37,921 nt of DNA from assembly GCA_002269645.1 (NCBI GenBank), contig NIVC01000115.1, forward strand, positions 1 through 37,921, written 5' to 3'. Positions 3,271 through 37,645 of the stretch are shown here, in pieces. Position 1 is the stretch's first letter. Every line of letters starts with the position of its first letter. The translations under genes and the position numbers were made by a program. Source of the stretch: Macrostomum lignano. Lineage: Eukaryota. The notes beneath the pieces are model-generated. The model was given only the letters and a program-made list of their open reading frames with translations, did not search any database and had not been told where the DNA came from.

Positions 3271-3588
3271 TCGATGCATAGCATCTTGATCAGACTGATC
3301 GACACTCAATCAATGAACAAGAACAGAAAAAACAGAAGCACTAGCTATGCATGATGCTGTTGTCATTTTCTCTATTTTCTCGAAAAATTATTTCATACAT
3401 TTTACATTTTACAGCAAGAAAATTATCGGCTTAAAAGCGCACAAAAATTTGGTTTTCAATAACGAAACGCACCGTCATACTTACATTGATTTAAAGACTT
3501 CTTCTAAGATATTAAACCAATTTGCTTAAATTCTGATAGAATAGCTAAAACATGATCTCTGTTCCTGACAGTAGTATTATGAGCATTT

Positions 3589-5330
3589 GACGATCAGACC
3601 GACGCTCGATGCCACCTCGACCAGCCTGTCGATCTGGCGCTGGGCGCCTTCAACGGACGAGGACAGGAGGGCGAGGTCGTCGGCGTAGCCAAGCACGCTC
3701 AGGCGCTTTTCGCCGTGTCGGCGACCGATGCGTCTGCGCAGCAGGAAGCCGTCATTAGCCGAGGGGAGTGCGGTCCGAAGCACCCAGTCCAGCAGCAGCA
3801 CGAAGAGGAACGGCGCTAGCGTGTCGCCCTGCAGAACTCCTGATGAAGTATCGAACAGGTCAGACAGGCCGTCCGCCGTCACCACAGCAGCTCGAGTATT
3901 GCAATACAGCGCCATGACTGCGTCGATTAGCTGCTGGGGTACCCGGTAGGCTCGAAGGACAAAGGGAAGTGCGGCTCTCAACACCGAGTCAAACGCCTTT
4001 CGAAAGTCAACGAAGACAATGATCAGCGTAGACTGGCGGATGCGCGCCTCCTCGATGACCCGGCAGAGTGCGAGGATCTGTGTCACTGTACCGCGTGTTG
4101 CGGCCGGAATCCGTTCTGCTCGTACCGCAGGTACGGGTCCAGCACCGACTGCAGACGATCGAGCAGCAGCCGGTTGAAGAGCTTCGCGGTGCAGGACATC
4201 AGCGAGATCCCGCGGTGGTCTTCTTTCCGCGTTGTCCCTGCCTTCTTCGGGATCGGCACGATGTGCGCGACGGTCCACTCGGTTAGGCGCAGGAGCGCCA
4301 GCGAGCACGTGGTTCATGACGCCTGTGACCTGGGAGGGCACACAGCGGAGCCGCAGCGCTTCGACCGGGACTTCGTCGGGGCCGAGCGCCTTGCCGCCTG
4401 ATGTTTTCCGAGCGAACAGCACAACGTTCTCCTTGGTGACTGGTCTGGTGCAGAAGTCCTCCTCAGCTGGGAGCGGCGTGTCCAGTGGGAGCGCAAAGCT
4501 GGCGGGCAGCGGCGACGCGGGCGCGTTCACGATGCCGGCGAAGAAGTCGCGCAATTCATTCCTGCGCTCCTCCGGGGTGTCGCCGGCCAGGTTCAGCGCC
4601 ACGCGCTTTTTGCGCCCGTCAGAGTCCGGACGGCCGTCCATACTGCGCGGCTCTTCACGTCGGGGCCGGCTGCAGTGATGGACCTAATGGCGTCGTTGAC
4701 AGCGGCCTGCTGCCGCTCGTCAAGAAGGCGCTCAAATGCGTCTTCAGCGTCGCCTGTGGGCCTCCGGTTTCTGCGGAGTCGCTCGATGTTGAGCCGCGCC
4801 TGCCTGATGATGGGGTCGCTCTGCCAGACAGGCAGCGATTTCTGCGCTGGTCGCATCAGCGGGACCGTCTGCTCTGCAGCGGCTCTAACGGCGGTGCTGA
4901 TGTCGGAATACTCCACCTCGCGCTGGTATCCAAGCGCGCCGACGAAGGCACCCGCGAATTGACGCTTCACGCGGGTGTCCAACAGTGCGCGATAGTAGCG
5001 CCGTGGCCGCTGCTTTGGCGGTCGGTAGAGCTGGTCGCGGAGCCGCAAGTCGCAGATCAGGAGTCGGTGGTCTGACCGGAGAGCCAGCGGAGCCATGGTG
5101 TCGCAGTTGGTGACGCGGCGGCGCTCGCGAGTGCGAACCAGCGCATGATCGAGTTGCGCCAGTCTCCTCGTGGCATTCCGCCCGCGTGCGTTCCGCCGCC
5201 TTCTCTTGCAGCCCGCAAAGGTGACCAGGCGGGCAGGGGGCTTGCGGAACTGGGTGTTCGCGGACACCAGATCCAGCCGGTCAAGCAGGTCCTCCAGCGC
5301 ATCGGTATTGGCGTCCTCAAGCGCAACATG
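3589..5330 (-). pseudogene. Inverted retroelement segment: APE endonuclease C-terminus and RT core, with several frameshifts
   Basis: Endonuclease motifs NTQFRK, QLDHALVR and SDHRLL; RT motifs FVDFRKAFDSV, GVLQGDTLAPFLF and GYADD. The frame changes near 4610, 4280 and 4095. Confidence 0.85.
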
Positions 5331-5332
5331 CA

Positions 5333-5984
5333 CAGGTGCTGACTGTGCCGGCCGACATCCCAGCGGACCTGACGTGCCGCGGCGCAGACTGGCAGACGAC
5401 CAAGCTCGCACGCTGCCAGCGGTTCACCTACCTCGGCGGTCTGGTGCCCCACGTGGAGGAAGACCTCCGGCGGCGCAGGGGATTCGCCTGGGCGGCCTTT
5501 CGTTCGATCCGAGCCGTCCTCCAGTCTGAAGCGCTGCCCGACCGCCAGAGGGCTCGGCTGTGGCAGGCGGTGGTCGAAACCGTCCTGCTCTACAACGCCG
5601 AGACGTGGACGCTGACGGCTACGCTAGAGCGCTAGACGCTAGACGTTACGCTAGAGCGGCAGCTGGACTCGGCGCACTCAGGACTGCTCCGTGCGGCCTT
5701 TCGAGCTGACGAGAGCGTCGGGACCGAGGCCCTGTACGATCGGGCCAAGCTGCAGCGCCCGTCCACCATCCTGCGCCGGTGGCGACTTCAACTGGCGGGC
5801 CACGTGATCCGGGCCGAGGGCTACTGCCCCCAACCTGTTCAGGACGTCCTGCTGCTCACCTTGCAGGGTCCGTTCAGGCGGGGTCTGGCCCGAACCCGTC
5901 GATACGTGGACTGCCTGCTGTGCGACGCTGGGGCGCCCCGACACTGACTTCGTTCGCTCCCAGGCTCTGCGGCGCGCCATCTGA
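5333..5984 (+). pseudogene. Non-inverted 3' retroelement segment: RT thumb and C-terminal region, interrupted by a 27-nt insertion containing a stop
   Basis: VLTVPAD..FTYLGG, RRRRGFAWAAF, VLLYNAETWTLT and RLQLAGHVIR. Confidence 0.8.
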
Positions 5985-7493: not shown

Positions 7494-7949
7494 CTGATTG
7501 GGGCGGAGTTGAGGGGTAGGAAAATTCAAATGACCTGAATGTACATTTAGGGTAGAGGGAGGCCAGAAGTGTACAGTAAGGGTTTGAAATAGCTCATATG
7601 TACAGCGAAAGGCAGAGATCGAGAGACCGATGATGCGCAGTGAAGTTTGGAAAGGGAATGTATGTACATTTGGAAAGAATGATGATGTACAGTGAAGGGC
7701 AGAAGGGAATGTACATAGATTAAGGGCAGGGAGACGCACCGTGATGTGCTTCATTGAAGAGGGTGTTTCTGTTCATTCGGAGGAAGGTTTTTAGAAAGAT
7801 AGTGACCTGAGTATGTACAACAGTTGCTCTTTTACCTTGGGTTGCGATAGGGGCCTCGCGGCCTATTCGCGGCGCCTGCGCCCCCCGTCAGTAGTAAGTA
7901 AGTAAGTATGTACAACAGTTTGGCTGAAATTATTCGTTTGTACACACAC

Positions 7950-8294
7950 CTCGTACACGTCGGAAAACGTCAAGTAGTTCTCAAACAGAGTTCCAGCTGT
8001 TGACAGACCAGACACGTTGACCCGAACAACGTAGCATGGGAATCTGCACTTCTCCTTCTTGCACAAGTAGCCATAGCTTTCCCGTTGGTTGCGCATGCAA
8101 TAGTGCAAATCTTCGCCAAGATATTCGCAGCTGGTCGGTTGAAATTGCGACTCGCGATAGTACGGCAATATGATGAGATAGGCAAGGATGCTGGACACTA
8201 TTAAACCGCAGGCGATCAACGATACGCAGGTGAGGAATACAATCTTTGCCAAGCCGATGACGTTGCAAAGTTTGTGGCATCTGCGTAAAGCCAT
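7950..8294 (-). CDS. KCNMB: BK channel beta subunit-like protein B, coding exon 1
   Basis: MALRRCHKLCNVIG, TM1, FPCYVVRVNVS. Donor GAG|GTGTGT, phase 0, at the same intron position as paralogue A. Confidence 0.85.
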
Positions 8295-8514: not shown

Positions 8515-9530
8515 GGGCGAGGCGATTCTTGGGGGGTTGATTTGGGGTGATTCTTGAGGGGTTGATTTGGGGCGATTCTTGAGGGGTGGATTTGGGGCGA
8601 TTCTTGAGGGGTGGATTTGGGGTGATTCTTGAGGGGTTGATTTGGGGCGATTCTTGAGGGGTAGATTTGGGGTGATTCTTGAGGGGTTGATTTGGGGCGA
8701 TTCTTGAGGGGTGGATTTGGGGCGATTCTTGAGGGGTGGATTTGGGGTGATTCTTGAGGGGTTGATTTGGGGCGATTCTTGAGGGGTGGATTTGGGGCGA
8801 TTCTTGAGGGGTGGATTTGGGGCGATTCTTGAGGGGTGGATTTGGGGCGATTCTTGAGGAGTAGATTTGGGGCGATTCTTGAGGGGTGGATTTGGGGCGA
8901 TTCTTGAGGGGTAGATTTGGGGCGATTCTTGAGGGGTGGATTTGGGGCGATTCTTGAGGAGTAGATTTGGGGCGATTCTTGAGGGGTGGATTTGGGGCGA
9001 TTCTTGAGGAGTAGATTTGGGGCGATTCTTGAGGGGTGGATTTGGGGCGATTCTTGAAGGGTTGATTTGGGGCGATTCTTGAGGGGTGGATTTGGGGCGA
9101 TTCTTGAGGGGTTGATTTGGGGGGGGTGATTCTTGAGGGGTAGATTTGGGGGGGGGTGATTCTTGAGGGGTAGATTTGGGGGGGTGATTCTTGAGGGGTT
9201 GATTTGGGGGGGTGATTCTTGAGGGGTTGATTTGGGGGGGGGGTGATTCTTGAGGGGTTGATTTGGGGGGGTGATTCTTGAGGGTTGATTTGGGGCGATT
9301 CTTGAGGGGTAGATTTGGGATTGATTCTTGAGGGTTGATTTGGGGCGATTCTTGAGGGGTTGATTTGGGGCGATTCTTGAGAGGTTGATTTGGGGCGATT
9401 CTTGAGAGGTTGATTTGGGGTGATTCTTGAGGGGTTGATTTGGGGCGATTCTTGAGGGGTTGATTTGGGGCGATTCCTGATGGGTGATTTGGGGCAATTC
9501 GGGATGGGCAGATTTGGGGCGATTCTTAAA
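8515..9530. repeat. 25-bp G-rich minisatellite (TTCTTGAGGGGTGGATTTGGGGCGA), ~40 copies
   Basis: Directly visible; accounts for the spurious 349-aa ORF 8448-9497. Confidence 0.95.
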
Positions 9531-12435: not shown

Positions 12436-12712
12436 TCAGGACTCCTCTTGCAGGAAATTGCTCGGCACGAGACCCTCGGCACCATTTCGTTCTAACCGGC
12501 CCATTAGAAAGCCGTCGTCGTCCATTGGTCCCAGTGCGATGATCACGTCGCCAGCGACAAAGCTGAGCTCCATATCGGAGTCAACATTGGGGCTAAGCTC
12601 CTTGGGATCGTAGTCGTATAAAGCTACAAGTCGGCGAAGCGGCGTTGCACCATTTGCTGCTGACGAGGACGGTTGCTGCTGTTGCTGCTGATGGAGTTGC
12701 TGCTGCTGCTGC

Positions 12713-12747
<35 letters not shown>

Positions 12748-12909
12748 TTGTTGCGACAGAAGCAGATCCAGTTGGCTCGGATCGTCAATTTGTCCAACAG
12801 GAACTTCGTTCACCATATTATAGGGGATCAGACCCGTGCGACCGTTGCATTCGCCGTGGTAAAATCCGTCTTCATCTCGGTCGCCCCACACCTTCATCAG
12901 CTGACCTTC
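12436..12909 (-). CDS. RIMBP2: RIM-BP last exon: second half of SH3-2, polyQ, SH3-3, stop
   Basis: Acceptor CCGCAG|GAA. EGQLMKVWGDRDEDGFYHGEC; LVALYDYDP..GLVPSNF. Confidence 0.9.
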
Positions 12910-13213: not shown

Positions 13214-13902
13214 CTTAAACGGCAACTCCTCTTGAATGGCATCCGGGTTCGGGCTCATTGTGGCGGGATCATAGTCGAATAGGGCAACAAAAATCCTGGA
13301 TATCCCGGATGGAGCAGCTCGCTGTTGCTGCTGCGGTTGCTGCTGCTGTTGCATATGCGGCTGCTGCTGCGGCTGCTCAGGCTCCGGCATTTCAAATGAC
13401 GACTCCTGCTGCTGACTGGGATGCCGCCTTTGCCGGCCTGCTCGATCCCTGCTCCCAGCTTGATGATGATGGTGCTGCTGCTGCTGCTGCTGCTGAGGCG
13501 GCGCCGGCGGAGGCGGAGGCGGCGGCGAGTCAGACCGGTGGCCACTTTGTCGGCGACTTCGCGATCCTCCGCCTCCGCCGCCACCGCCGCCGCCGCCGCC
13601 TGCCGCCGCCGATGACTGCCTGGCCTGATGCCGGCCGTGATGGTACGGCTCGCCTCGCCTGCCACCGTAGTGCCGGTCCCGCTGCTGCTGGTAGCGGTCC
13701 CGGTCCCGATCCCGATCCCGGTCCCGATCCCGGTCCCGATCCCGGTCCCGATCCCGGTCCCGATCCCGATCCCAGCCGGAGCCGCGACCGCCGCGTCTGC
13801 CGCTGTCGTAGGGATGCGTGACGTCATCGCTGATGATCTCGTCCTCCTCGGGCATGTACTCCTCTTCGGCGTCGGAATAGGGCAGGTCCTCGTTGGTGAC
13901 GT
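13214..13902 (-). CDS. RIMBP2: RIM-BP exon: acidic, (RD)n, polyG/P/Q/H linker and first half of SH3-2
   Basis: Acceptor CTCCAG|AC (phase 1); donor AAG|GTTGGT (phase 0). RIFVALFDYDPATMSPNPDAIQEELPFK. Confidence 0.88.
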
Positions 13903-14007
13903 CTGGAGGGTTGGCAGTCAGTTCTATGCTTGAGCGATTTCCGATGCATATCGTTGCAATAAGCTTAGTGAAATAAGACAACTGGCACTCTGATCCTGGC
14001 TTCTGTC

Positions 14008-15150
14008 ATATGACTCCATGTCCCTGTCATATGACTCCATGTCCCTGTCATATGACTCCATGTCCCTGTCATATGACTCCATGTCCCTGTCATTTGACTC
14101 CATGTCCCTGTCATTTGACTCCATGTCCCTGTCATTTGACTCCATGTCCCTGTCATATGACTCCATGTCCCTGTCATATGACTCCATGTCCCTGTCATTT
14201 GACTCCATGTCCCTGTCATTTGACTCCATGTCCTGTCATATGACTTCATATGATCTCCTTAATCCCTGTCACTCTCATCTCACTAATCCCTTACACTCTG
14301 ATCTCCTTAATCCTTGTCACTTTCATCTCACTAATCCCTGTCACTCTCATCTCACTAATCCCTGTCACACTCATCTCACTAATCCCTGTCACACTGATCT
14401 CACTAATCCCTGTCACTCTGATCTCACTAATTCCTGTCACTCTGATCTCCTTAATCCCTGTCACTCTGTTCTCACTAATCCCTGTCACTCTGATCTCACT
14501 AATCCCTGTCACTCTGATCTCCCTAATCCCTGTCACTCTGATCTCACTAATCGCTGTCACACTGATCTCCCTAATCCCTGTCACACTGATCTCCCTAATC
14601 CCTGTCACTCTGATCTCACTAATCCCTGTCACACTGATCTCCCTAATCCCTGTCACTCTGACTCCCTAATCCCTGTCACTCTGATCTCCCTAATCCCTAT
14701 CACTCTGATCTCCCTAATCCCTGCCACTCTGATCTCACTAATCCCTGTCACTCTGATCTCCCTAATCCCTGTCACACTGATCTCCCTAATCCCTGTCACT
14801 CTGATCTCCCTAATCCCTGTCACTCTGATCTCCCTAATCCCTGTCACTCTGACTCCCTAATCCCTGTCACTCTGATCTCCCTAATCCCTGTCACTCTGAC
14901 TCCCTAATCCCTGTCACTCTGACTCCCTAATCCCTGTCACTCTGATCTCCTTAATCCCTGTCACTCTGATCTCACTAATCCCTGTCACTCTGATCTCCCT
15001 AATCCCTGTCACTCTGATCTCCCTAATCCCTGTCACTCTGATCTCACTAATCCCTGTCACTCTGATCTCACTAATCCCTGTCACTCTGATCTCCCTAATC
15101 CCTGTCACTCTGACTCCCTAATCCCTGTCAGTCTGACTCCCTAATCCCTG
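14008..15150. repeat. Compound minisatellite: 21-bp (TGACTCCATGTCCCTGTCATA) array followed by 24-bp (TAATCCCTGTCACTCTGATCTCAC) array
   Basis: 21-mers at ~14008-14237, 24-mers at ~14250-15150; shared core TCCCTGTCA. Confidence 0.95.
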
Positions 15151-15237
15151 TCACTCTGTACCTCTGTCCCTGTACCCGCCCTGTCACTCTGTCCCTGTAC
15201 CCGCCCGAAAGACAAGAGAAAGAAAGCAAGAACTCAC

Positions 15238-15503: not shown

Positions 15504-15509
15504 TTTATT
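15504..15509 (-). terminator. Intronic polyadenylation signal AATAAA for the alternative terminal exon
   Basis: About 53 nt after the stop at 15562, followed on the minus strand by a GT-rich stretch (GTGTGGCGTTGGTTGG). Confidence 0.6.
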
Positions 15510-15561
15510 TATCAAGTGCCATAAAACAGGTTCCTTGCCACCTCAACACGAAAGCTCCACC

Positions 15562-17859
15562 TCAGCTGGAGCCTTCGCCTCCTCCGGCGAGGTTCTTCGG
15601 GTCCAGCTTCTTGAACATGCTCGCCGTGCCCTCGCCGAACGCTTCAAATCTCTTCTTGGTGTCCCCACCGAAGGCGTCGAACTTTTTCTTAGTATCCTCG
15701 TTGAACGCTGCGAATTTCTTTTTATTTTCCTCGTTGAAGGCTTCGAAATTTTTTCGATTCTCCTCGTTCGCTTCGCGGATCTTTTCGCCCGTCTCATCGG
15801 CGATTTCCTCCACTTTTTCTTGGAATTCGTGGAAGCCTTTCTTTAGCCGGCCTAAGAAGCTCGAGTCCTCGGGATCGTTGGGATCGCCTTCGGCACCTTC
15901 AACACCTTCGGCACCTTCAGCACCTTCGGCACCTTCAGCGCCTTCAGCAGCCGCAGCTTCAGCAGCCGCAGCTTCAGCAGCCGCAGCTTCAGCAGCCGCA
16001 GCTTCAGCAGCCGCAGCTTCAGCAGCCGCAGCTTCAGCAGCCGCAGCTTCAGCAGCCGCAGCTTCAGCAGCCGCAGCTTCAGCGGCCGCAGCTTCAGCAG
16101 CCACAGCTTCAGCAGCCGCAGCTTCAGCGGCCGCAGCTTCAGCAGCCACGGCAGCCTCCTCTTCAGGCGTTGGCAGGGGTTCACCCCTAGGGCCCCGCTG
16201 CCTACCCTCGGCCGCTTCGTCGACTGTCCGACCAAACTCGTCCAACAGTTCCCCGCCGGGTCCTCGGACAACCTGTCCGGTGGATTTGTCTTCGAGCACG
16301 CCGAACTCGTTGACCCGCCAGCCGCACTCGGAGGCCAGCAGATGACCGCTCGCCGGGTCGCGAGGCGCGCCGCACACCGGGCGACACCGAGCGTCGAAGT
16401 AGCGACCCTGGGCGTCTCTCAACGGCGCCCCGGTTGAGGCGTCGACCAGCAGGCCGAATTCGTTCTCGCGTCTTTCTGCCGAGTCAATAACGGCTTGACT
16501 GTCGGCGTCAACAAGCTGCTGCTCGTCGGCCAGACAGACTTTCCGGCAAGCCAGCGGCCGACCTCCGGCGTCGAGCAGCTCACCGTTTGGCCCAAGCACG
16601 GGCTGCCCGGTGTCCGAGCTGGTCAGCACTCCGAGCTCGTTCGGCTCGGCCGGCGACACCAGACTGCCGTCCGGGCGGCGGACTCCGTGCACCGGACGAC
16701 AATCGGAGTCGAAAAACTCGCCGGACGGACCTCGGACTGGCCGGCCGGACTCGTCCAGCAGGACGCCATTGTCGTTGACGCCGCCAGTTGGCAGCGGCGT
16801 GCCAGTCGACGTGTTCAACAGTCGGCCAGTGGACGCATCAAGCCGGGCCCGGCGACAATCGATTGGCCGGCCGGACGGGTCGAGCAGCTGGCCGTCCGGC
16901 CCCGGCTCGCTCAGCACGCCGTAGTAGTTCGGCTGCTGGGCCTCGTCGTCGACCAGCTGGCCGTTCGGCAGCCGCCGGCCGTAAACGACGGCGCCGTCGG
17001 GAGGGCCATAAAATTCTCCGTTTAGTCCGCGAAGCGGCAGCCCGCGCGAGTCGGCCAGCACGTTGAACTCGTTGGCCACGGCGTCGGCCACTTCGTCCGG
17101 CGAGTCAACACGACGACAGGCGATTTCGGCTGCCGTTGCGTCCAATAGTTCGCGTCCGGTCGGCCCGGACAGTGGCCGGTTGTCTGTCCCGGACACTAAC
17201 ACGCCGAAGTAGTTGAGCTTTGGAGGCGGGTCGTCTGGCTTGCACGCCAGCAGACGGCCATCGTCGGGATGTCGGAGGCCGCCGAGAGCGGGCCGGCCGT
17301 CGGCACCAAAGAACTCGCCGCGGCTGCCTCGCAGCGGCACGGAGCCGACAGTCAGGATGCCGTGTGAGTTCGCCGCGGCCTCGGGAAACGCGTCCAACGG
17401 AGCAGCACCGTCCGGGACTGGCCGGCAGGCGATCGGCCGACCGTCCGAGTCGATTAGAGTGCCGTCTGGTCGGGTGAGAGCCAGGCCGGTGTCCAGATTA
17501 GCCAGGACGCCGAACCAGTTGACGGCGGGCGGCGGGTCGCCCAGCAGCTCGCCGTCGGGGCCGCGCGGCCCGTAGACCGGCTGGCCGTTGGAGGAGAAAA
17601 ACTCGCCAGACTGGCCTCGGATCGGGACGCCGTTTTCGTCGATTAGCACGCCGTTAGCGTTGACGCTTGTAGCGTCGCCGAAGGTCGTAGAATTATTAAA
17701 TCCGTTAGACTCCGGTACAAGACGGCCGTCCGGGGTTCGAGTCGCGATTCGACAAAGTATGGGAGCGCCGTCTGGCGGAGATCGGAATTCGCCGCTCGGA
17801 GTTCGCAGCGGCTGACCGGTTGAGGGATCAACCAGGATGCCGAATTCGTTGGTTTGGGC
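15562..17859 (-). CDS. Putative alternative terminal exon of RIM-BP (765 aa): 11 NxxG[VI]L repeats, (EAAAA)n spacer, 11-mer amphipathic tail
   Basis: Open 2298-nt GC-rich frame whose only Met lies near the C-terminus, with an in-frame TAA just upstream. Acceptor CCTTGTGTCAG|GCC is phase 0, matching the donor at 18831; own polyA signal. Confidence 0.75.
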   Translation of the reverse strand, partial: AQTNEFGILVDPSTGQPLRTPSGEFRSPPDGAPILCRIATRTPDGRLVPESNGFNNSTTFGDATSVNANGVLIDENGVPIRGQSGEFFSSNGQPVYGPRGPDGELLGDPPPAVNWFGVLANLDTGLALTRPDGTLIDSDGRPIACRPVPDGAAPLDAFPEAAANSHGILTVGSVPLRGSRGEFFGADGRPALGGLRHPDDGRLLACKPDDPPPKLNYFGVLVSGTDNRPLSGPTGRELLDATAAEIACRRVDSPDEVADAVANEFNVLADSRGLPLRGLNGEFYGPPDGAVVYGRRLPNGQLVDDEAQQPNYYGVLSEPGPDGQLLDPSGRPIDCRRARLDASTGRLLNTSTGTPLPTGGVNDNGVLLDESGRPVRGPSGEFFDSDCRPVHGVRRPDGSLVSPAEPNELGVLTSSDTGQPVLGPNGELLDAGGRPLACRKVCLADEQQLVDADSQAVIDSAERRENEFGLLVDASTGAPLRDAQGRYFDARCRPVCGAPRDPASGHLLASECGWRVNEFGVLEDKSTGQVVRGPGGELLDEFGRTVDEAAEGRQRGPRGEPLPTPEEEAAVAAEAAAAEAAAAEAVAAEAAAAEAAAAEAAAAEAAAAEAAAAEAAAAEAAAAEAAAAEAAAAEAAAAEGAEGAEGAEGAEGVEGAEGDPNDPEDSSFLGRLKKGFHEFQEKVEEIADETGEKIREANEENRKNFEAFNEENKKKFAAFNEDTKKKFDAFGGDTKKRFEAFGEGTASMFKKLDPKNLAGGGEGSS

Positions 17860-17994
17860 CTGACACAAGGGGCGCGCATGCGGTAGTGGTGGTGGTGGTG
17901 GAAGGGTGCTGGTTTAATAGTGCAAGCTGTGCTTTGATTGACAGGCACGGAATAACGATGCTTCGCATATTTTTATGTGCAAAGGAGGATAAAA

Positions 17995-18530
17995 AGTTTA
18001 CAGGGCAGGGATATAGGACAGGGAAACTATGGGTAGGAGTTGGGGTGGGTGTTTTATACACCCAGAGGAGGCTATAGTGTACATTAGGGCAGGAAAACTA
18101 AGGGTAGGAGTTGGGGTGGGTGTTTTATTCACCCAGAGGAGGCTATAGTGTACATTAGGGCAGGAAAACTAAGGGTAGGAGTTGGGGTGGGTGTTTTATT
18201 CACCCAGAGGAGGCTATAGTGTACATTAGGGCAGGCAAACTAAGGGTAGGAGTTTGGGTGGGTGTTTTATTCACCCAGAGGAGGCTATAGTGTACATTAG
18301 GGCAGGCAAACTAAAGGTAGGAGTTGGGGTGGGTGTTTTATACACCCAGAGGAGGCTACAGTGTATATTAGGGCAGGAACAGCGAAGCTAGGAGTTGGGG
18401 TGGGTGTTTAATACACTCAGAGGGAGGCTACAGAGTAAATTGGGGCAGGAAAATTGAGGGTAGAAGTTGGGGTGGGTGTTTTTTACACCCAGAGGAGGCT
18501 ACAGTGTACATTAGGGCAGGAAAACTGAGG
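17995..18530. repeat. 71-bp intronic tandem repeat, ~7-8 copies
   Basis: GTGTACATTAGGGCAGGAAAACTAAGGGTAGGAGTTGGGGTGGGTGTTTTATTCACCCAGAGGAGGCTATA units. Confidence 0.92.
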
Positions 18531-18830
18531 GTAGGAGTTGGCTGGGTGTCTTATAGAACCTGAGGAAGTTTTACCTACATGTAATAAGTAACGATATTGG
18601 CTAAACTCTAAAGAGTTAGCAGGTTAGTATATATACATAAAATGTTACTTATAGAAAACGTTTAAATAGCACAATCTACAACAAAATAAACGAGAGTAAG
18701 TTGATATCTTTTGTAAAGTTAAGACACAATCTATACAACATCAAAAGGCTACCACAGACACGTGAGAAAGGAAAAATCACTACGGATTCTAAGAAAGCTA
18801 AAATTGCTGCCAAATTGGTCTAGGCGTTAC

Positions 18831-19424
18831 CCTCGGATTGCGCGAAGCGGACAACAGGTGCTGCCTGCGCAATCGATGGAATTTCGATGGACTAACGCTG
18901 CGACTTCGAATCATTCGGTGGTCCATCAGGGCTGAGGTGTTCGAGGCGGCGGCGGCGGCGGCAGCTCCTCGCCTACTGGAGCGATGATGCTGGGAATGAG
19001 GCTGGCGCAGGCTGCCATGCTGAGGCCAGTCATCCTGCTGCTGCACCAGCTGCTGATGATGAGGCGGCAGCTGCCAGTCATCAAAGGAGGCCTGCATCTG
19101 CAGCTGCCTGTAACCGCCGCCGCCGCCAACAGGGTTGGCATTGTCGTACATGGAGGCGGGACCTGCAACGCCGTCGTTGGGATGACGAAGCAGGCCGCCC
19201 TGCTGCTGCTGCTGATGGTGATAAGCTTGATTATAACCGGCATGAACACCTGTTGGCGACCCGGTTAGATGAGGCGGCATACCAGCGGTTCTACTGAACC
19301 TGGACGACGGGCCAAGATTCAAAGGCCTACCAGACGTGGAAAGTCTTTGTTGTTGCTGCTGCTGTTGTTGTTGCAGGAGCAGAAGTTGCTGCTGTTGCTG
19401 CTTTCCGAAAGCCAGATGACGCTG
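18831..19424 (-). CDS. RIMBP2: RIM-BP exon: Q/H/S-rich disordered linker after FN3-3 (198 aa)
   Basis: NAGNAG acceptor ACAG|CAG, donor AGG|GTAACG; open 594-nt frame, phase 0 to 0. Confidence 0.75.
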
Positions 19425-19974
19425 CTGTTTTTTTTGTTTAAAACAACGGCATTTGTTTGGCGTTGTAGGATTTGAGGTTTATGGGATTTGGGGATTTAAA
19501 GGGAACAGGGTGGGTGAGAAAAAGAATTATTTTTATCCCTTTTAGAAGCTCTTGTAAAATAAAAAGTAAAAGTAGTTTTAGTTCAAAGGAAGCAACGTCG
19601 CATATCGCCCATAAACCATAGGAGACCTATAGTTGCAAGATTACGAGTATTAGGATTAAGAATCTCTGTGAATTCCAACATGCCGATAAAGTTACGAGTA
19701 ATAAATAATTATGAATTAGCCTAAAAAAGCAAATTTTCTAAAATAAACGATTTTTTATGTATGATGCGCAATTGCGGCACGATGGTTTTAAATAAAATTG
19801 ACTTTCGATACATATCGGTACAACGAGAAAACTCTTTTTTTCGATGGTTAAGTTTTAAAAAATGCAATAATGACTTAGAATCGAGGCAATAGAAATTCTT
19901 TAATTTCGATAGAAATTAAGTCATTTATAAACAATCCTTTCTCCGATACATACCAGGAAGTTTGGCAATTCCTG

Positions 19975-20152: not shown

Positions 20153-20594
20153 ATCTTCTGGCCTAGGCAAATCGATAGACGAATTAGCGGCAGACAGAGT
20201 CAGCGAGCACGGCGGGTCCGAGTCTAAACTCTCCACAGTCTGACCATTGTGAGTACCGACTGTGCGCACGGTCAGGAAGGCGGTGTGAGGTGGCAGGGAG
20301 TTCTGGGCGAGCAGGCAGTGATCTGAGTACGCGTCCAAGCACTCCGTGACCCGGTGCCTGCCGTCAGCGTACACTGCGTAGCCGGTGACCCGAACACCGT
20401 TGGACACGCCGTCGGAGTTGGCAACGGTGACCGGTAGCCAGGTGACTAGCAGGGAATGGTCCTGAGGCCGGGTCGATTTGAACGTCCAGAGGAGCGTCGG
20501 GCAGGCCGCCGGGCGTGGTTCGAAACTCCAAGGTGGCGGTGAGGAGAGGCACGGAGGTGCCCGTAGTTTTCGGAGGCCTGGCCCGCACGCACAC
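20153..20594 (-). CDS. RIMBP2: RIM-BP exon: end of FN3-2 and FN3-3, with an apparent frameshift near 20465
   Basis: VCVRARP..PDAPLDVQIDP in one frame, then PQDHSLLVTWLPV..VTGYAVYADG..ESLDS in another. Length 442 nt between phase-0 splice sites. Confidence 0.85.
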
Positions 20595-21152: not shown

Positions 21153-21815
21153 GTCTCCAAGGGCTGACGGGGCTGTCAGTCTCCAAGGGCTAACGGGGCT
21201 GTCAGTCTCCAAGGGTTGTCAGTCTCCAAGGGCTGTCAGTCTCCAAGGGCTGTCAGAGTCTCCAAGGGCTGTCAGAGTCTCCAAGGGCTGTCAGAGTCTC
21301 CAAGGGCTGCCAGAGTCTCCAAGGGCTGTCAGAGTCTCCAAGGGCTGCCAGAGTCTCCAAGGGCTGCCAGAGTCTCCAAGGGCTGCAGAGTCTCCAAGGG
21401 CTGCCAGAGTCTCCAAGGGCTGTCAGTCTCCAAGGCTGTCAGTGTCTCCAAGGCTGCTGTCAGTGTCTCCAAGGGCTGCCAGAGTCTCCAAGGGCTGTCA
21501 GTCTCCCAAGGCTGACTGTCAGAGTCTCCCAAGGCTGACGGGCTGTCAGAGTCTCCCAAGGCTGACGGGCTGCCAGAGTCTCCCAAGGCTGACGGGCTGT
21601 CAGAGTCTCCCAAGGCTGACGGGCTGTCAGAGTCTCCCAAGGCTGACGGGCTGTCAGAGTCTCCCAAGGCTGACGGGCTGTCAGAGTCTCCCAAGGCTGA
21701 CGGGCTGTCAGAGTCTCCCAAGGCTGACGGGCTGTCAGAGTCTCCCAAGGCTGACGGGCTGTCAGAGTCTCCCAAGGCTGACGGGGCTGCCAGAGTCTCC
21801 AAGGGCTGTCAGTCA
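21153..21815. repeat. Intronic minisatellite (GTCTCCAAGGGCT core; 27-bp GTCAGAGTCTCCCAAGGCTGACGGGCT units in the distal half)
   Basis: Directly visible. Confidence 0.92.
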
Positions 21816-22559: not shown

Positions 22560-23260
22560 GAGATTGGGGAGATACAGGGAATTGGGTGGGTGTGTGCAGA
22601 AGGGCAAGGAATGGAGACGAAAATGAGGGGGAGACAGGGAATGGGGTGGGTGCGCGCATAGAGTGGCAAGAAATGGAGATGAAAATGAGGGGGTGGGGAG
22701 ACAGGGAATGGGGTGGGTGCGCGCATAGAGTGGCAAGGAATGGCGACGAAAATAATGGGGTGGGGGAGACAGGGAATGGGGTGGGTGCGCGCATAGAGTG
22801 GCAAGGAATGGCGACGAAAATAAGGGGGTGGGGAGACAGGGAATGGGGTGGGTGCGCGCATAGAGTGGCAAGGAATGGCGACGAAAAAAGGGGGTAACAG
22901 GGAATAGGGTTGGTGCACGCATAGAGTGGTAAAGAATGGAGACGAAAATAAGGGAGACAGGGAATGGGGCTGGTGCGCGCATAGTGGCAAGGAATGGCGA
23001 CGAAAATAATAGGGTGGGGGAGACAGGGAATGGTGTGGGTGCGCGCAAAGAGTGGCAAGGAATGGCGACGAAAATAATGGGGTGGGGGAGACAGGGAATG
23101 GGGTTGGTGCGCGCATAGAGTGGTAAAGAATGGAGACGAAAATAAGGGGGTCGGGGAGACAGGAAAGGGGGTGGGTGCGCGCATAGAGTGGCAAGAATTG
23201 GAAGCGAAATTGGGGTGGTAGGGAGACAGAGAGTGGGTGGATGCACGTATAGAGTGGTAA
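22560..23260. repeat. ~63-66-bp G-rich intronic minisatellite, ~11 copies
   Basis: GGGAGACAGGGAATGGGGTGGGTGCGCGCATAGAGTGGCAAGGAATGGCGACGAAAATAA units. Confidence 0.92.
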
Positions 23261-23555
23261 GGAATATAACAAGGACGACTTACGTAGAAGGAAGGGAAAC
23301 CTTGTTTCTTGGAAAATTTTAGAAGGCAGGTTTTCCCGAAAAAATACACTACGGAGATAGGAAGTTTGCATTTTTTCAGCACAAAAATTGTTATTGCTAT
23401 TGATAGGAGGCAGATCCAGTGTTCATCTTTTGATATGTTGTGCCTTTCTTAGTGCTCTATCGATACTCATAGAGCTTTTCGTTCAGAAAATTAGGATTCT
23501 ATGTTAATTTTTTATTCTACGTACATTTCCTGTACCTAAAAATCATAAAAATGCA

Positions 23556-24757: not shown

Positions 24758-24894
24758 CTGCCGTGTAAATAGAAAGAGATTATATTTATAAGCATGATTT
24801 TAGAGGTGTGCTAACATTCGTTCCATTTGGATTTGGGGAGCTTATGTAAGCGTTTGGTTGATTTTAGGATAAACATATGAGATCATTTAAGTCC

Positions 24895-25775
24895 TAATTA
24901 CCTCTGGGATCTGGGACTAATTGAGTCTTAATTACCTCTGGGATCTGGGACTATTTGAGTCTTAAGTACCTCTGGGATCTGGGACTTTTGAACTCTTAAT
25001 TACCTCTGGGATCTGGGACTATTTGAGTCTTAAGTACCTCTGGGATCTGGGACTATTTGAGTCTTAAGTACCTCTGGGATCTGGGACTATTTGAGTCTTA
25101 AGTACCTCTGGGATCTGGGACTATTTGAGTCTTAAGTACCTCTGGGATCTGGAACTTTTTGAATCTTAATTACCTCTGGGATCTGGGACTATTTAAGTCT
25201 TGAGTACCTCTGGGATCTGGGACGATTTGAGTCTTAAGTACCTCTGGGATCTGGAATTTGAATCTTAATTACCTCTGGGATCTGGGACTATTTGAGTCTT
25301 AAGTACCTCTGGGATATGGAACTTTTTGAATCTTAATTACCTCTGGGATCTGGGACTATTTGAGTCTTGAGTACCTCTGGGATCTGGGACGATTTGAGTC
25401 TTAAGTACCTCTGGGATCTGAGTCTTGACTCTTTGAGTCTTAAGTACCTCTGGGATCTGGGACTATTTGAGTCTTAATTACCTCTGGGATATGGGACTCT
25501 TTGGGACGTCTTAGTACCTCTGGGATCTGGACTATTTGAGTCTTAAATACCTCTGGGATCTAGAGACTATTTGAGTCTTAATTACCTCTGGGATCTGAGA
25601 CTATTTGAGTCTTAATACCTCTGGGATCTGAGACTATTTGAGTCTTAATTACCTCTGGGATCTGGGACTATTGAGTCTTAATTACCTCTGGGATCTGAGA
25701 CTCTGGGATTTAGAGTCTTAATTACCTCTGGGATCTGAGACTATTTGAGTCTTAATTACCTCTGGGATCTGATAT
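24895..25775. repeat. 34-bp intronic minisatellite (TTAAGTACCTCTGGGATCTGGGACTATTTGAGTC), ~25 copies
   Basis: Directly visible. Confidence 0.95.
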
Positions 25776-26590: not shown

Positions 26591-26924
26591 CTGAGTTCGT
26601 TTTTTGGTCCGCAGAAATTGCGTTTTAGTTTTAGTTTAGTTTGATTGAAACAGTACAAGTGGTTTGTAATAATTATGATACCATTTTAAGGATAGTAAGT
26701 AGTCATCTGGTACATTGAAAATAATTTTATCAAAGCTAATAGTACAAGCTATATTAAATAAACGCTGCACAGAATTTACAGCAAGAAATATAATTATTTG
26801 GTTACAGAGACAATCAAGGTATAATAGATATAAGAAATAATAAAAATGCGCACATGCACTCTCACACGAAAAAAGTAGGAAAACACGAGAGAATAGATAC
26901 AAGAAGGAAGAAAGACTAGACACC

Positions 26925-27835
26925 TAGACACTGTGAGGGAGATAGAGAGGAGAGAGACTAGACACTGTGAGGGAGATAGAGAGGAGAGAGACTAGACACT
27001 GTGAGGGAGATAGAGAGGAGAGAGACTAGACACTGAGGGAGATAGAGAGGAGAGACTAGACACTGTGAGGGAGATAGAGAGGAGAGAGACTAGACACTGT
27101 GAGGGAGATAGAGGGGAGAGAGACTAGACACTTTGAGGGGGAGAGAGGAGAGACTAGACACTGTGAGGGAGGAGAGAGGAGAGACTAGACACTGTGAGGG
27201 AGAAGAGAGGAGAGACTAGACACTGTGAGGGGGGAGAAAGAAGAGACTAGACACTGTGAAAGAGATAGAGAGAAGAGATACTAGACACTGTGAGGGGAGA
27301 GGGAGAGAGACTAGACACTGTTGAGGGGAGAGAGGAGAGAGAGACTAGACACTGTGAGGGGGAGAGGAGAGAGACACTGTGAGGGGAGAGAGAGGAGAGA
27401 GAGATTAGACACTGTGAGGGGGGAGAGGAGAGAGACTAGACACTTTGAGGGGGGAGAGGAGAGAGAGACTAGACACTGTGAGGGGGAGAGGAGAGAGACA
27501 CTGTGAGGGGAGAGAGAGAGAGAGAGATTAGACACTGTGAGGGGGGAGAGGAGAGAGACTAGACACTGTGAGGAGGGGAGAGGAGAGAGACACTGTGAGG
27601 GGGAGAGGAGAGAGAGAGACACTGTGAGGGGGGAGAGGAGAGAGACAGACTGTGAGGGGGGAGAGGAGAGAGACTAGACACTGTGAGGGGAGAGAGGAGA
27701 GAGTTTAGACACTGTGAGGGGGGAGAGGAGAGAGACTAGACACTGTGAGGGGAGAGAGGAGAGAGACTAGACACTGTGAGGGGAGAGAGGAGAGAGACTA
27801 GACACTGTGAGGGGAGAGAGGAGAGAGACTAGATA
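26925..27835. repeat. ~30-bp purine-rich minisatellite (AGACTAGACACTGTGAGGGGGAGAGGAGAG)
   Basis: Directly visible. Confidence 0.93.
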
Positions 27836-32756: not shown

Positions 32757-33100
<344 letters not shown>

Positions 33101-33964
33101 CAGATGCAGTGAAGCAGTGTATGGAACAAAATAAGGTCATCGTGAACGGGGCAGCGAAATGAGCCGCGAGCAAGCAGAAGCCCCAGTTTACTCAGATGAG
33201 AAGCGGGCACGTGCGCAGATACAGCAGGCAGGCGCCCAGATCAAGTAATGATGATACACAGCGCCCGCAAAAACCTACTCAAGCATCGATAGCTCCGTCT
33301 GACCAATTTTTTTTCTCTCTCTCTCTCGCCCCCCCCCCACCCACACCCATTGCAGCCTCCCGGGACTGAAACTACATCAAGGACATTCGTTGTCGCATTA
33401 TAAATTATGCATAGAGAATCAACATCCAGTGGTGGCGGGGGGGGGGGTTGCTGGGCTAGCAACAGTGGCCGGCAAGGCCTGTCAGCCAGACGGTTTAAAC
33501 AGCCGATAGCTTAAGCCCAGGGAAACGAATGACCAGGAAGCACCGGGCGTAGAGAAAATTGAAAGATAAATCTTCCACCAGCTAGGCGCAATGTCATGTG
33601 AGAACGAGAGGGATCGCGCGGCTCGCAGGGGACACAAGTCGGCATGGGGATCGAGGGAGTAAAGAGGGAAGAAAGCTGTGCAGAAATCGAATATCAGCCT
33701 CTAGCAAAGCGACATCTTGTCTTAGTGTTTCTGTATCTGTCCTTCCGTCTCCGGGAGGATATTTGGAAAAACTACAGTCACAGGAATCTCCAGCTCTGAA
33801 GACTGGCCGACAGATTGCTTGGCTTACAACATTGGAGATGGCATATCTAGCATTGTGATCCGTCAGTTTAGATGTCAATGTACTTTTGAGTCGGAACTAA
33901 AGAGGCCCGCGAGTGAAAGGAGGAAGTTTGAGAGTCAGAACTCGGACTAAAAAGTAAAAAGTAC

Positions 33965-36789: not shown

Positions 36790-37645
36790 TCGGGATAGCT
36801 GAAGGAGATAAAATCCCAGAGAATCTTTTTTGGGGATAACTGAAGGGGATAATATCCCAGGAATCATTTTTAGAGATAACTGAAGGGGATAAAATCTCAG
36901 GAATCTTTTTTGGGGATAACTGAAGGGGATAATATCCCAGGAATCATTTTTAGAGATAACTGAAGGGATAAAATCTCAGGAATCTTTTCTGGGGGTAACT
37001 GAAGGGGATAAAATTCCATGAATTATTTTTGGGATAACTAAAGGGGATAATACCCCATGAATTATTTTTGGGATAACTAAAGGGGATAATATCCCTCAAT
37101 CAGTTTTGGGGATAACTGAAGGGGATAATATCCCATGAATCATTGTTGGGATAACTGACGGGAATAATATCCTATGAATCATGTTTAAGGATAACTGAGG
37201 GGAATAATATCTCAGGAATAACTTTTAGGATAACTGAAGGGGATAATATCCCATAAATCATTTTTGGGATAACTGAAGGGATAATATACCATCAATCAGT
37301 TTTGGGGATAACTGAAGGGATGATATCCATGAATCATTTTTGGGGGTAACTGAAAGGGATAATAATATCTCAGGAATCATTTTTAGGCATAACTTAAGGG
37401 GATAATATCCCATGAATCATTTTTGAGGATAACTGAAGGGGATAATATACCATCAATCAGTTTTGGGGATAACTGAAGGGGATGATATCCCATGAATCAT
37501 TTTTGGGGATAACTGAAGGGGATAATATCTCAGGAATCATTTTTAAGGATAACTGAAGGGGATAATATCCCATGAATCATTTTTGAGGATAACTGAAGGG
37601 GATAATATCCCATGAATCATTTTTGGGGTAACATGCAGGGATAAT
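36790..37645. repeat. ~40-bp intronic minisatellite (GGGATAACTGAAGGGGATAATATCCCATGAATCATTTTT), ~20 copies
   Basis: Directly visible. Confidence 0.93.

Follow-up and report, generated by a model that had tools for sequence, protein, structure and literature searches.

Can a scaffold protein of the neurotransmitter release site carry a lipid-binding helix of its own? The question is raised by a stretch of 37,921 nucleotides from contig NIVC01000115.1 (assembly GCA_002269645.1), called the window throughout, in which the minus strand at 15604..15834 encodes a tandem array of seven 11-residue repeats. A preliminary description of the sequence read this array as a synuclein/perilipin-like tail on an active-zone protein. 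The array is an 88-residue, eight-unit 11/3 (3-11) amphipathic helix, and the gene that contains it encodes a flatworm-type RIM-binding protein (RIM-BP) with one SH3 domain, three FN3 domains and two further SH3 domains. The helix appears to be a lineage-specific addition to the linker between FN3-III and SH3-II of RIM-BP. Its best-supported function would be reversible binding to a lipid surface, a reading to which we give a probability of about 0.45.

An amphipathic helix built from 11-residue repeats

The seven repeats, FHEFQEKVEEI, ADETGEKIREA, NEENRKNFEAF, NEENKKKFAAF, NEDTKKKFDAF, GGDTKKRFEAF and GEGTASMFKKL, stand exactly as they were first quoted, on the minus strand; translation of the plus strand over the same interval gives no meaningful peptide. 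The array is defined by its translation, its layout on a helical wheel and the peak of its hydrophobic moment. An additional N-terminal unit, DSSFLGRLKKG (15835..15867, minus strand), lies in the same register, with Phe at position 4, Leu at position 8 and a net charge of +2, and its counterpart in the flatworm Macrostomum lignano is DPGFFGRIKKG. Given this upstream unit, the helix comprises 8 units and 88 residues (15867..15604).

Hydrophobic residues had been described at positions 8, 11 and often 4 of each unit. Positions 8 (V, I, F, F, F, F, F in units 1-7) and 11 (I, A, F, F, F, F, L) bear this out, with one Ala at position 11, but position 4 (F, T, N, N, T, T, T) is truly hydrophobic in the first unit only and is Thr or Asn in 6 of the 7. 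The clusters of Lys described at positions 5-7 are present, as Lys or Arg, in units 3-6 but not elsewhere. On an 11/3 wheel, positions 11, 4 and 8 are adjacent and make a single straight stripe, with Phe at 8 and 11 and Thr or Asn at 4 between them. Position 7 (K, K, N, K, K, R, M) borders one side of the stripe, and position 5 (Q, G, R, K, K, K, A) together with position 1 borders the other. The face opposite the stripe is formed by positions 2, 3 and 9, which are mostly acidic, and by position 6, which is Lys or Glu. A conserved stripe of 11 Phe runs along the helix.

The wheel and moment analysis proposed with the preliminary description agrees with an 11/3 helix. Over 77 residues the hydrophobic moment (muH) is greatest at 98.5 degrees (11/3 corresponds to 98.18), with a value of 0.42-0.43; when 77 to 88 residues are taken, the peak lies at 98.5-98.75 degrees with muH of 0.41-0.43, and the full length gives 0.42. 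Shuffled versions of the 77 residues have a mean muH of 0.10 (standard deviation 0.05), and none of 20,000 reaches the observed value. The array is a non-chance pattern. By the same measure alpha-synuclein gives 0.26 and ApoA-I gives 0.35. At the heptad angle of 102.9 degrees, muH is only 0.04 for the 77 residues (range 0.04-0.09), and the contrast with 0.42 at 98.2 degrees excludes a canonical heptad coiled coil.

The net charge is -3 over 77 residues and -1 over 88 residues. The first third of the helix is strongly acidic (z = -4 to -6 in 18-residue windows), and the C-terminal half is mildly basic. Acid-base pairs spaced i/i+3 and i/i+4 are enriched, with 26 observed, a number reached by 32 of 5,000 shuffles. 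Pro is absent across the 88 residues, and Gly opens the last two units (three in the M. lignano orthologue). Among units 3-6, third codon positions account for most of the DNA differences (6 of 8 and 8 of 12), which suggests that these repeats are old and have been maintained by selection acting on the peptide, in contrast to the DNA repeat of the neighboring (EAAAA)n tract described below, which is 96% identical.

AlphaFold2, run in single-sequence mode, predicts one continuous helix over query residues 128-211 with a predicted local distance difference test score (pLDDT) of 72-87, from the F of the DSSFLGRLKKG unit to the K before the final L. A low-confidence hinge parts this helix from that of the (EAAAA)n tract. 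A Foldseek search of the PDB with the model of the tail gave 0 matches.

Conservation in a macrostomid relative

An exhaustive phmmer search compared the 108-residue tail with 1.84 billion representative proteins and returned 11 matches, among which the sole RIM-BP is UniRef entry A0A1I8HA44 from M. lignano (P0001 in our list; E 2e-18, 63% identity to the tail). Its Pfam domains (Ig_RIMBP2, fn3 and SH3) identify it as a RIM-BP. In that protein the helix segment is internal: it lies between FN3-III and SH3-II, and some 200 linker residues separate it from SH3-II/III. The segment is the best-scoring high-scoring segment pair by tblastn (1e-25), with 63% identity as compared to 44-49% for the FN3 domains.

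The only insertion or deletion that separates the window from A0A1I8HA44 in this segment is exactly 11 residues long and keeps the register; there are six units plus the cap in A0A1I8HA44 and seven plus the cap in the window. Across the 7 paired units, residue class is always preserved at positions 4, 8 and 11, and the residue itself at position 1; on the polar face, identity at positions 2, 3 and 9 drops to 3 of 7. The moment of the A0A1I8HA44 segment peaks at 99.0 degrees, with muH of 0.45-0.47 (0.47 at the peak). The conservation, the unit-exact indel, the face-specific substitution and the third-codon bias together argue for purifying selection on an in-register amphipathic helix.

The exhaustive search with the tail recovered no RIM-BP from any other lineage, and the helix appears, from this sequence comparison, to be confined to a macrostomid-like lineage. 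No match came from indexed homology searches with the entire open reading frame (ORF), the module region or the tail either. The first two reached a ceiling of 8,000 candidates; the tail search drew 21 candidates and overlooked A0A1I8HA44, even though that protein, 63% identical and with shared 8-residue words, is in the collection, so these indexed searches are no proof of absence.

The host gene

The host is indeed an active-zone protein, as first described. The FN3-III exon (20153..20467, minus strand) matches Pfam Ig_RIMBP2 (PF25523) at 4.9e-22, with 78.4 bits against a gathering cut-off of 27; it is 44% identical to A0A1I8HA44 and ends at a phase 0 donor, GAT/GTAAGT. An exon of 750 nt at 13214..13963 (minus strand, phase 0-0) encodes the linker and the first half of SH3-II, with 71% identity to A0A1I8HA44 over RIFVALFDYDP and what follows. 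The second half of SH3-II and SH3-III are encoded at 12448..12909 (minus strand), which matches Pfam SH3_2 at 3.3e-17 and SH3_9 at 2.2e-16; SH3_1 also matches this last exon. When the M. lignano RIM-BP is used as a tblastn query, its domains fall on the minus strand in order, with SH3-I at 24757-24674, FN3-I, II and III at 22353-20201, SH3-II at 13300-13208 and from 12909, and SH3-III at 12642-12451.

RIM and calcium channels are partners of the SH3 domains of RIM-BP, and the N-terminal region of RIM-BP touches the scaffold and takes part in recruiting vesicles (PMC7337501). The Drosophila linker between FN-III(3) and SH3-II, about residues 1040-1318, has no assigned structure (PMC7337501). 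No lipid-binding element in RIM-BP is described in the literature searched.

Predicted exon and transcript architecture

The helix is encoded near the end of a large exon of 2.3 kb (17859..15562), in phase 0, between FN3-III and SH3-II. The open frame runs for 784 codons (17913..15565) and then meets TGA; over 765 codons it contains 0 stops, as compared to 10-36 in the other five frames, and the fraction of G+C at third codon positions (GC3) is 0.69-0.74, against 0.71 in the neighboring FN3-III exon. The sole in-frame ATG is the Met codon of GEGTASMFKKL, the last of the 11-mer units; the ORF must therefore be an exon spliced to upstream exons. A probable splice acceptor, ccccttgtgtcAG/GCC, is read from the sequence at 17860..17861 (minus strand), with the exon starting at 17859 in phase 0. 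A second candidate acceptor at 17910-09 was rejected, given that it is out of frame.

Between FN3-III and the large exon lies a putative linker exon rich in Q, S and R (18831..19424, minus strand; 594 nt, phase 0-0), with a tandem acceptor cAG/cAG and a donor AGG/GTAACG. The acceptor, at 19421-19427 on the minus strand, is of the NAGNAG type, and two products that differ by one Gln are possible. Because all the exons are of phase 0-0, the large exon can be spliced in frame to either the FN3-III or the Q-rich exon, and skipping both the Q-rich and the large exon also keeps the frame.

At its 3' end the large exon encodes the helix, then 13 C-terminal residues, DPKNLAGGGEGSS, and the TGA stop (15564-15562); these residues and the stop occupy 15562..15603 on the minus strand, with pLDDT below 50. 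Of the 13 residues, an LDP motif is conserved in the orthologue and the others are not. Downstream of the stop the sequence is AT-rich and closed in all frames, and a putative polyadenylation signal, AATAAA (15504..15509, minus strand), starts 53 nt past the stop. The only donor-like site at this end lies past the stop. Reading the exon as a cassette by way of that site, G/GTGGAG at 15561/15560, was rejected; in addition to its position, it needs a non-canonical downstream acceptor at 13902. The simplest reading is that the large exon would be an alternative last exon, with a product that lacks SH3-II/III. The word tail, used in the preliminary description, thus suits the gene in the window, where 13 residues and a stop follow the helix, but not the orthologue model, where the segment is internal. 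We infer the splicing and polyadenylation pattern, as we do all lipid binding, from sequence.

Three further regions of the large exon precede the helix. A hinge at 15868..15941 (minus strand), rich in Gly/Ala/Glu and then Pro/Asp, reads (GAE)n and ends in GDPNDPE; AlphaFold2 models it as coil with pLDDT 55-62, and Tandem Repeats Finder (TRF) reports a period 9/18 array at 15887-15949. Upstream of the hinge is the acidic (EAAAA)n tract (15942..16164, minus strand), with about 14 units and a net charge of about -17. It is predicted as one long helix of 85 residues (pLDDT 86-93) and lacks an amphipathic moment. TRF finds a period of 15 nt, 13.7 copies and 96% matches, and the tract looks recently expanded and is probably length-polymorphic; the orthologue has only a loosely similar acidic stretch rich in Ala and Thr.

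The remainder of the exon, 16165..17859 on the minus strand, is parsed into eleven modules of 45-63 residues (GC3 0.74). Two types, NxxGVLxDxxGxPxRGxxGEFF..RPV..G.R.PDG.L and NxFGVL..TG..GPxGELLDxxGRPIACR, alternate as A and B, with lengths of about 47-52 residues. AlphaFold2, given the internal-repeat alignment, models short beta hairpins with pLDDT 76. The modules have no Pfam relative and are absent from the M. lignano orthologue model. A phmmer search of the PDB gave nothing meaningful, and in a Foldseek search of the PDB the best matches to the model, glucansucrase glucan-binding repeats and the teneurin YD shell, are not significant (E 0.24, TM 0.15). The alternating modules may be an undescribed beta-hairpin repeat. 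The predicted isoform would thus consist of the N-terminal region, SH3-I, three FN3 domains, the optional Q-rich exon and eleven beta-hairpin modules, followed by the acidic (EAAAA)n rod, the flexible hinge, the amphipathic helix and the stop.

Resemblance to known amphipathic helices

When the tail is searched against the PDB as a single sequence, the best matches are ApoA-I, A-IV and E, with E 0.013. A two-species profile lowers the E-value to 8.9e-5, and its top 11 matches are all apolipoproteins; the profile match to ApoA-IV amounts to 26 bits, with no single stretch significant. In Pfam, residues 18-96 of the tail match PhaP_Bmeg (PF09602) with E 0.0017 and 18.8 bits, against a gathering score of 28.3, and the Apolipoprotein family (PF01442) is matched with E 0.0019 by the window and 3e-4 by M. 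lignano, at 18.4 and 21.0 bits against a cut-off of 90. Neither the window nor M. lignano has a match to Synuclein, Perilipin or LEA_4 (PF02987) even at E<=10, and the KTKEGV motif is absent from the repeat sequence. The helix fails membership in every named family.

Bulk descriptors were computed after Copic et al. 2018 (PMC5889406, Table 1), and the helix has muH 0.42 with hydrophobic, aromatic and charged fractions of 0.31, 0.14 and 0.44. In the same order, the published values are 0.48, 0.32, 0.10 and 0.49 for CCT-alpha domain M; 0.39, 0.40, 0.065 and 0.35 for ApoA-I; 0.30, 0.47, 0.02 and 0.24 for alpha-synuclein; 0.35, 0.37, 0.01 and 0.23 for Plin3; and 0.26, 0.35, 0.002 and 0.15 for Plin4 (PMC5889406, Table 1). 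The helix therefore falls within the range published for helices that bind lipid; CCT-alpha domain M is closest to it and ApoA-I second, with alpha-synuclein, Plin3 and Plin4 far away. Sequence and bulk descriptors together point to the exchangeable apolipoproteins and CCT-alpha domain M as its nearest analogues.

With the apolipoproteins the helix shares an 11-residue periodicity with a moment near 98 degrees and a zwitterionic polar face that is basic at the interface and acidic at the centre. The charges follow the class A layout, in that K/R at positions 5 and 7 edge the 11-4-8 stripe and D/E occupy positions 2, 3 and 9; Lys at position 6, in the polar centre, deviates from it. Apolipoproteins are the only solved structures reached by sequence search, and their family is the top or near-top Pfam match. 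However, tandem 22-mers punctuated by proline are the apolipoprotein hallmark (PMC5889406), and the 88 residues here contain no such 22-mers. In addition, the helix, at only 88 residues, is short and belongs to an intracellular scaffold rather than a secreted lipoprotein, and its face is dominated by Phe instead of Leu/Val. The apolipoprotein resemblance is most likely convergent. CCT-alpha domain M is likewise an 11-mer-based, amphitropic helix rich in both acid and base, on a cytosolic protein, and has the nearest bulk descriptors; it is an autoinhibitory regulator of an enzyme, whereas the helix here is an appendage to a scaffold, and the likeness is one of composition only. No CCT chain is found among the PDB matches at E<=10.

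The comparison to alpha-synuclein and perilipins holds for geometry but not for chemistry. Like alpha-synuclein, the helix has seven to eight 11-mers that span about 13 nm, a non-polar face edged by Lys with Thr/Asn at its centre, and a presynaptic setting. In experiments, Thr in the middle of the face and Lys at its edges make alpha-synuclein binding weak and selective, and replacement of the central face residue by Leu or Phe abolishes selectivity for both curvature and charge (PMC3135411). The alpha-synuclein face is restrained and made of small residues (Val/Ala/Thr; PMC3135411). In the window, T/N occupies position 4 in 6 of 7 units and K/R is present at 5 and 7 in units 3-6, but Phe occupies 8 and 11. 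It is net negative where alpha-synuclein is positive, uses Phe in place of Val/Ala (aromatic fraction 0.14 versus 0.02) and is more charged (0.44 versus 0.24). Furthermore, it has a strong intrinsic helix prediction and sits in a chain that far exceeds 1,000 residues, where alpha-synuclein is a free 14-kDa protein.

Perilipins (Plin1-5) share the uninterrupted 11-mer register, length variation by exact units and Thr in the non-polar face (PMC5889406). Their helices have a charged fraction of 0.15-0.23, an aromatic fraction of at most 0.01 and muH of 0.26-0.35, as compared to 0.44, 0.14 and 0.42 here, and the gene in the window has no PAT domain or four-helix bundle; the frame ends 13 residues past the repeats. 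Membership in the synuclein, perilipin or LEA_4 families was rejected, since there is no hidden Markov model match and the charge and aromatic content are wrong.

Two other systems offer partial parallels. The phasins (PhaP_Bmeg), which give the best Pfam E-value, are an amphipathic helical coat of a hydrophobic inclusion, the bacterial polyester granule, but the match is sub-threshold and the family is bacterial, with no contextual link. Complexin, a functional analogue, is presynaptic, occurs in invertebrates and vertebrates and has a C-terminal amphipathic motif that binds curved synaptic-vesicle membranes (PMC5442187). Its motif is short, does not repeat, lacks an 11-mer array and is unrelated in sequence to the helix.

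Several of the remaining phmmer matches carry 11-mer arrays of their own. P0003 and P0008 have repeats of AFKEFG(Q/K)DT(D/E)K and P0005 has repeats of FAAVKEDTSKQ; P0011 and P0004 also have arrays. The units are nearly the same as those of the helix, [F/L]xx[F/A]x[D/E][D/E]T[x]K[x], with the same moment peak at 98 degrees, but the arrays are much longer and have no RIM-BP domains. Several of these bacterial-type arrays score on Pfam Apolipoprotein, with P0004 above the cut-off, and in P0003, P0008 and P0005 the array directly follows hydrophobic, membrane-type segments. Homology to the P0003 and P0005 arrays was rejected in favor of cross-kingdom convergence, because both loci proved bacterial: P0003 is encoded beside a type III secretion cluster and follows a TPR chaperone-like gene, and P0005 is encoded beside parAB. 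The matches P0002, P0007, P0009 and P0010 are spurious, repeat-on-repeat alignments to WD40 or other repeats. As a separate observation, P0003 (L001 6001-8175) and P0008 combine a weakly SseC-like N-terminal region and a hydrophobic segment with at least 20 copies of AFKEFG(Q/K)DT(D/E)K, and P0003, directly after the chaperone-like gene, is near YscD and needle genes. To judge from its sequence and neighbors, P0003 is probably a translocator of type III secretion that carries a repeat domain of apolipoprotein-like character.

Possible functions of the helix

If the helix binds lipid, the Phe stripe, moderated by the central Thr/Asn, would insert shallowly and reversibly into phospholipid, either of the synaptic vesicle or of the presynaptic plasma membrane. 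Lys and Arg at the edges of the stripe would snorkel, and contact with the membrane would be made by the two basic parts of the helix, its N-terminal cap and its C-terminal half. The acidic (EAAAA)n rod would be held away from the membrane and act as a spacer or stalk. The scaffold would thereby gain a direct, low-affinity and length-dependent grip on membranes. A fuller and more speculative proposal, which we regard as unlikely as a whole, is that the scaffold uses an intrinsic 3-11 helix of apolipoprotein-like design, mounted on a rigid acidic stalk, to grip vesicle or release-site membranes directly; that an alternative last exon supplies this membrane anchor in place of the SH3 pair that binds calcium channels and RIM; and that the arrangement would be an independent macrostomid counterpart of the tethering and clustering by alpha-synuclein in vertebrates.

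Several results weigh against lipid binding. Every family match is below its curated threshold (18-21 bits versus 90 for PF01442). A HeliQuest-type discriminant (0.944 muH + 0.33 z) exceeds the cut-off for lipid binding in 2 windows of the helix and in 0 of M. lignano, where the maximum is 1.19, and it rates only the C-terminal half as possible to borderline lipid-binding. The net charge of -1 to -3 and the acidic first third imply that electrostatic attraction to anionic vesicle membranes is absent or confined to the C-terminal half; such attraction is essential for alpha-synuclein. The mean hydrophobicity is about 0, below that of alpha-synuclein or ApoA-I. The enriched acid-base pairs and the helix that AlphaFold2 predicts with no partner suggest that the helix may be stable in solution, which would favor self-association or partner binding. 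Finally, there is a single orthologue, known as a computational gene model, and the segment is internal there.

The main rival is self-association, a doubtful but serious alternative in which the Phe stripe packs against other copies of the stripe. The product would be a straight hendecad bundle, a helical hairpin with the GG and GEG units at its hinge, or aromatic stickers in a condensate, and it would oligomerize RIM-BP or strengthen the scaffold with no need for lipid. Coiled coils, whether right-handed or straight, can likewise be made of 11-residue repeats, and apolipoproteins that carry no lipid pack their amphipathic helices into bundles. The aromatic content of 14%, the charged content of 44%, the partner-free helix prediction and the enriched intrahelical acid-base pairs all fit such packing, and the near-neutral to negative net charge speaks against electrostatic capture by a membrane. 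The core, however, would be sparse: there is no heptad signal, the hendecad core positions a, d, e and h are only half hydrophobic (Phe at 8 and 11, with Thr/Asn at 4 and Lys at 7 as the others), and 18% of the residues are strongly hydrophobic. No bundle-like match was found by Foldseek. RIM and RIM-BP reportedly phase-separate, in keeping with a sticker role, but disordered stickers need no exact register, and the helix has a unit-exact indel and face-linked conservation.

A second alternative is that the helix docks to protein, with its array of F-x-x-F serving as a multivalent ligand for a groove in a partner, either an endocytic or vesicle adaptor or a domain of RIM-BP. Helical FxxF-type motifs are ligands of appendage domains in endocytic proteins, and the helix offers five to six evenly spaced FxxF pairs that are class-invariant across both sequences. 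No pair is an exact match to a known motif, the spacing is fixed at 11 where motif arrays normally tolerate variable spacing, and the database likeness is entirely to lipid-surface proteins and not to adaptor ligands. Docking is improbable on this evidence, even in a hub protein such as RIM-BP (PMC7337501).

It is also improbable that the helix has no specific function and stems from repeats that expanded in a disordered linker, or from an intronic ORF that is not expressed and whose stop marks a decaying or poison exon. The introns and the exon are rich in tandem repeats, including the 96%-identical (EAAAA)n tract, the stop is premature relative to the isoform with SH3-II/III, and three indexed protein searches gave no match. 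Neutral drift is nonetheless hard to reconcile with a segment that is better conserved in M. lignano than the FN3 domains (63% versus 44-49%), with the unit-exact indel, face-specific conservation and third-codon-position bias, or with a frame that has 0 stops in 765 codons where the others have 10-36 and GC3 like that of its host; an AATAAA also starts 53 nt past the stop.

Least probable by far is the LEA-like alternative named in the preliminary description, in which a charged, solvated helix would be a ruler or a desiccation shield with no interface: LEA group 3 proteins also use 11-mers, 44% of the residues are charged, with enriched i/i+4 salt bridges, and the adjacent (EAAAA)n tract resembles a rigid spacer, but there is no LEA_4 match at E<=10, a conserved, solvent-exposed stripe of 11 Phe is atypical of single-alpha-helix or LEA sequences, and a shield makes little sense in an active-zone scaffold.

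Other features of the window

Just downstream of the RIM-BP gene are two paralogous ORFs in opposite orientation, at 1694-2167 on the plus strand and 7863-8294 on the minus strand, which encode 157 and 143 residues. They match Pfam CaKB, the beta subunit of the BK channel, at 1.6e-6 (28.4 bits, cut-off 25.1) and 9e-4. The BK beta subunits are usually regarded as vertebrate proteins, and CaKB-like copies in a flatworm-like genome, beside the gene for a release-site scaffold, are curious.

A fragment of a retroelement of the long interspersed nuclear element type lies at 3577-5411 on the minus strand. Its reverse-transcriptase ORF matches RVT_1 at 8.9e-15, an overlapping ORF upstream of it has no Pfam match, and the GC fraction of the region is 0.65-0.68. 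Over the whole window, about 25 minisatellite arrays fill the introns of the RIM-BP gene, with periods of 4-163, up to 39 copies and 78-97% matches, for example at 488-1000, 8521-9527, 14003-15158, 18014-18566, 21196-21808, 22565-23265, 24885-25771, 26924-27833, 32757-33104 and 36792-37645. These minisatellites create many spurious long repeat ORFs in all frames.

Biological significance

The 3-11 amphipathic repeat helix is already known as a structural kind; what is new is the sequence family, the host protein and the unusual chemistry. The significance is bounded by the present sample of one flatworm lineage and one orthologue, with membrane binding inferred from sequence physics. The combination of bulky Phe with central Thr/Asn and a zwitterionic polar face, unlike that of synuclein, perilipin or ALPS motifs, would make the helix a natural experiment in helix tuning. 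RIM-BP is a core organizer of neurotransmitter release sites and is known to act by protein-protein contacts. A 3-11 helix in its FN3-to-SH3 linker, if it binds lipid, would provide a direct protein-lipid link inside the active-zone scaffold. If it is true that an alternative last exon trades SH3-II/III for the helix, there would be an isoform switch between a channel-coupled and a membrane-coupled RIM-BP.

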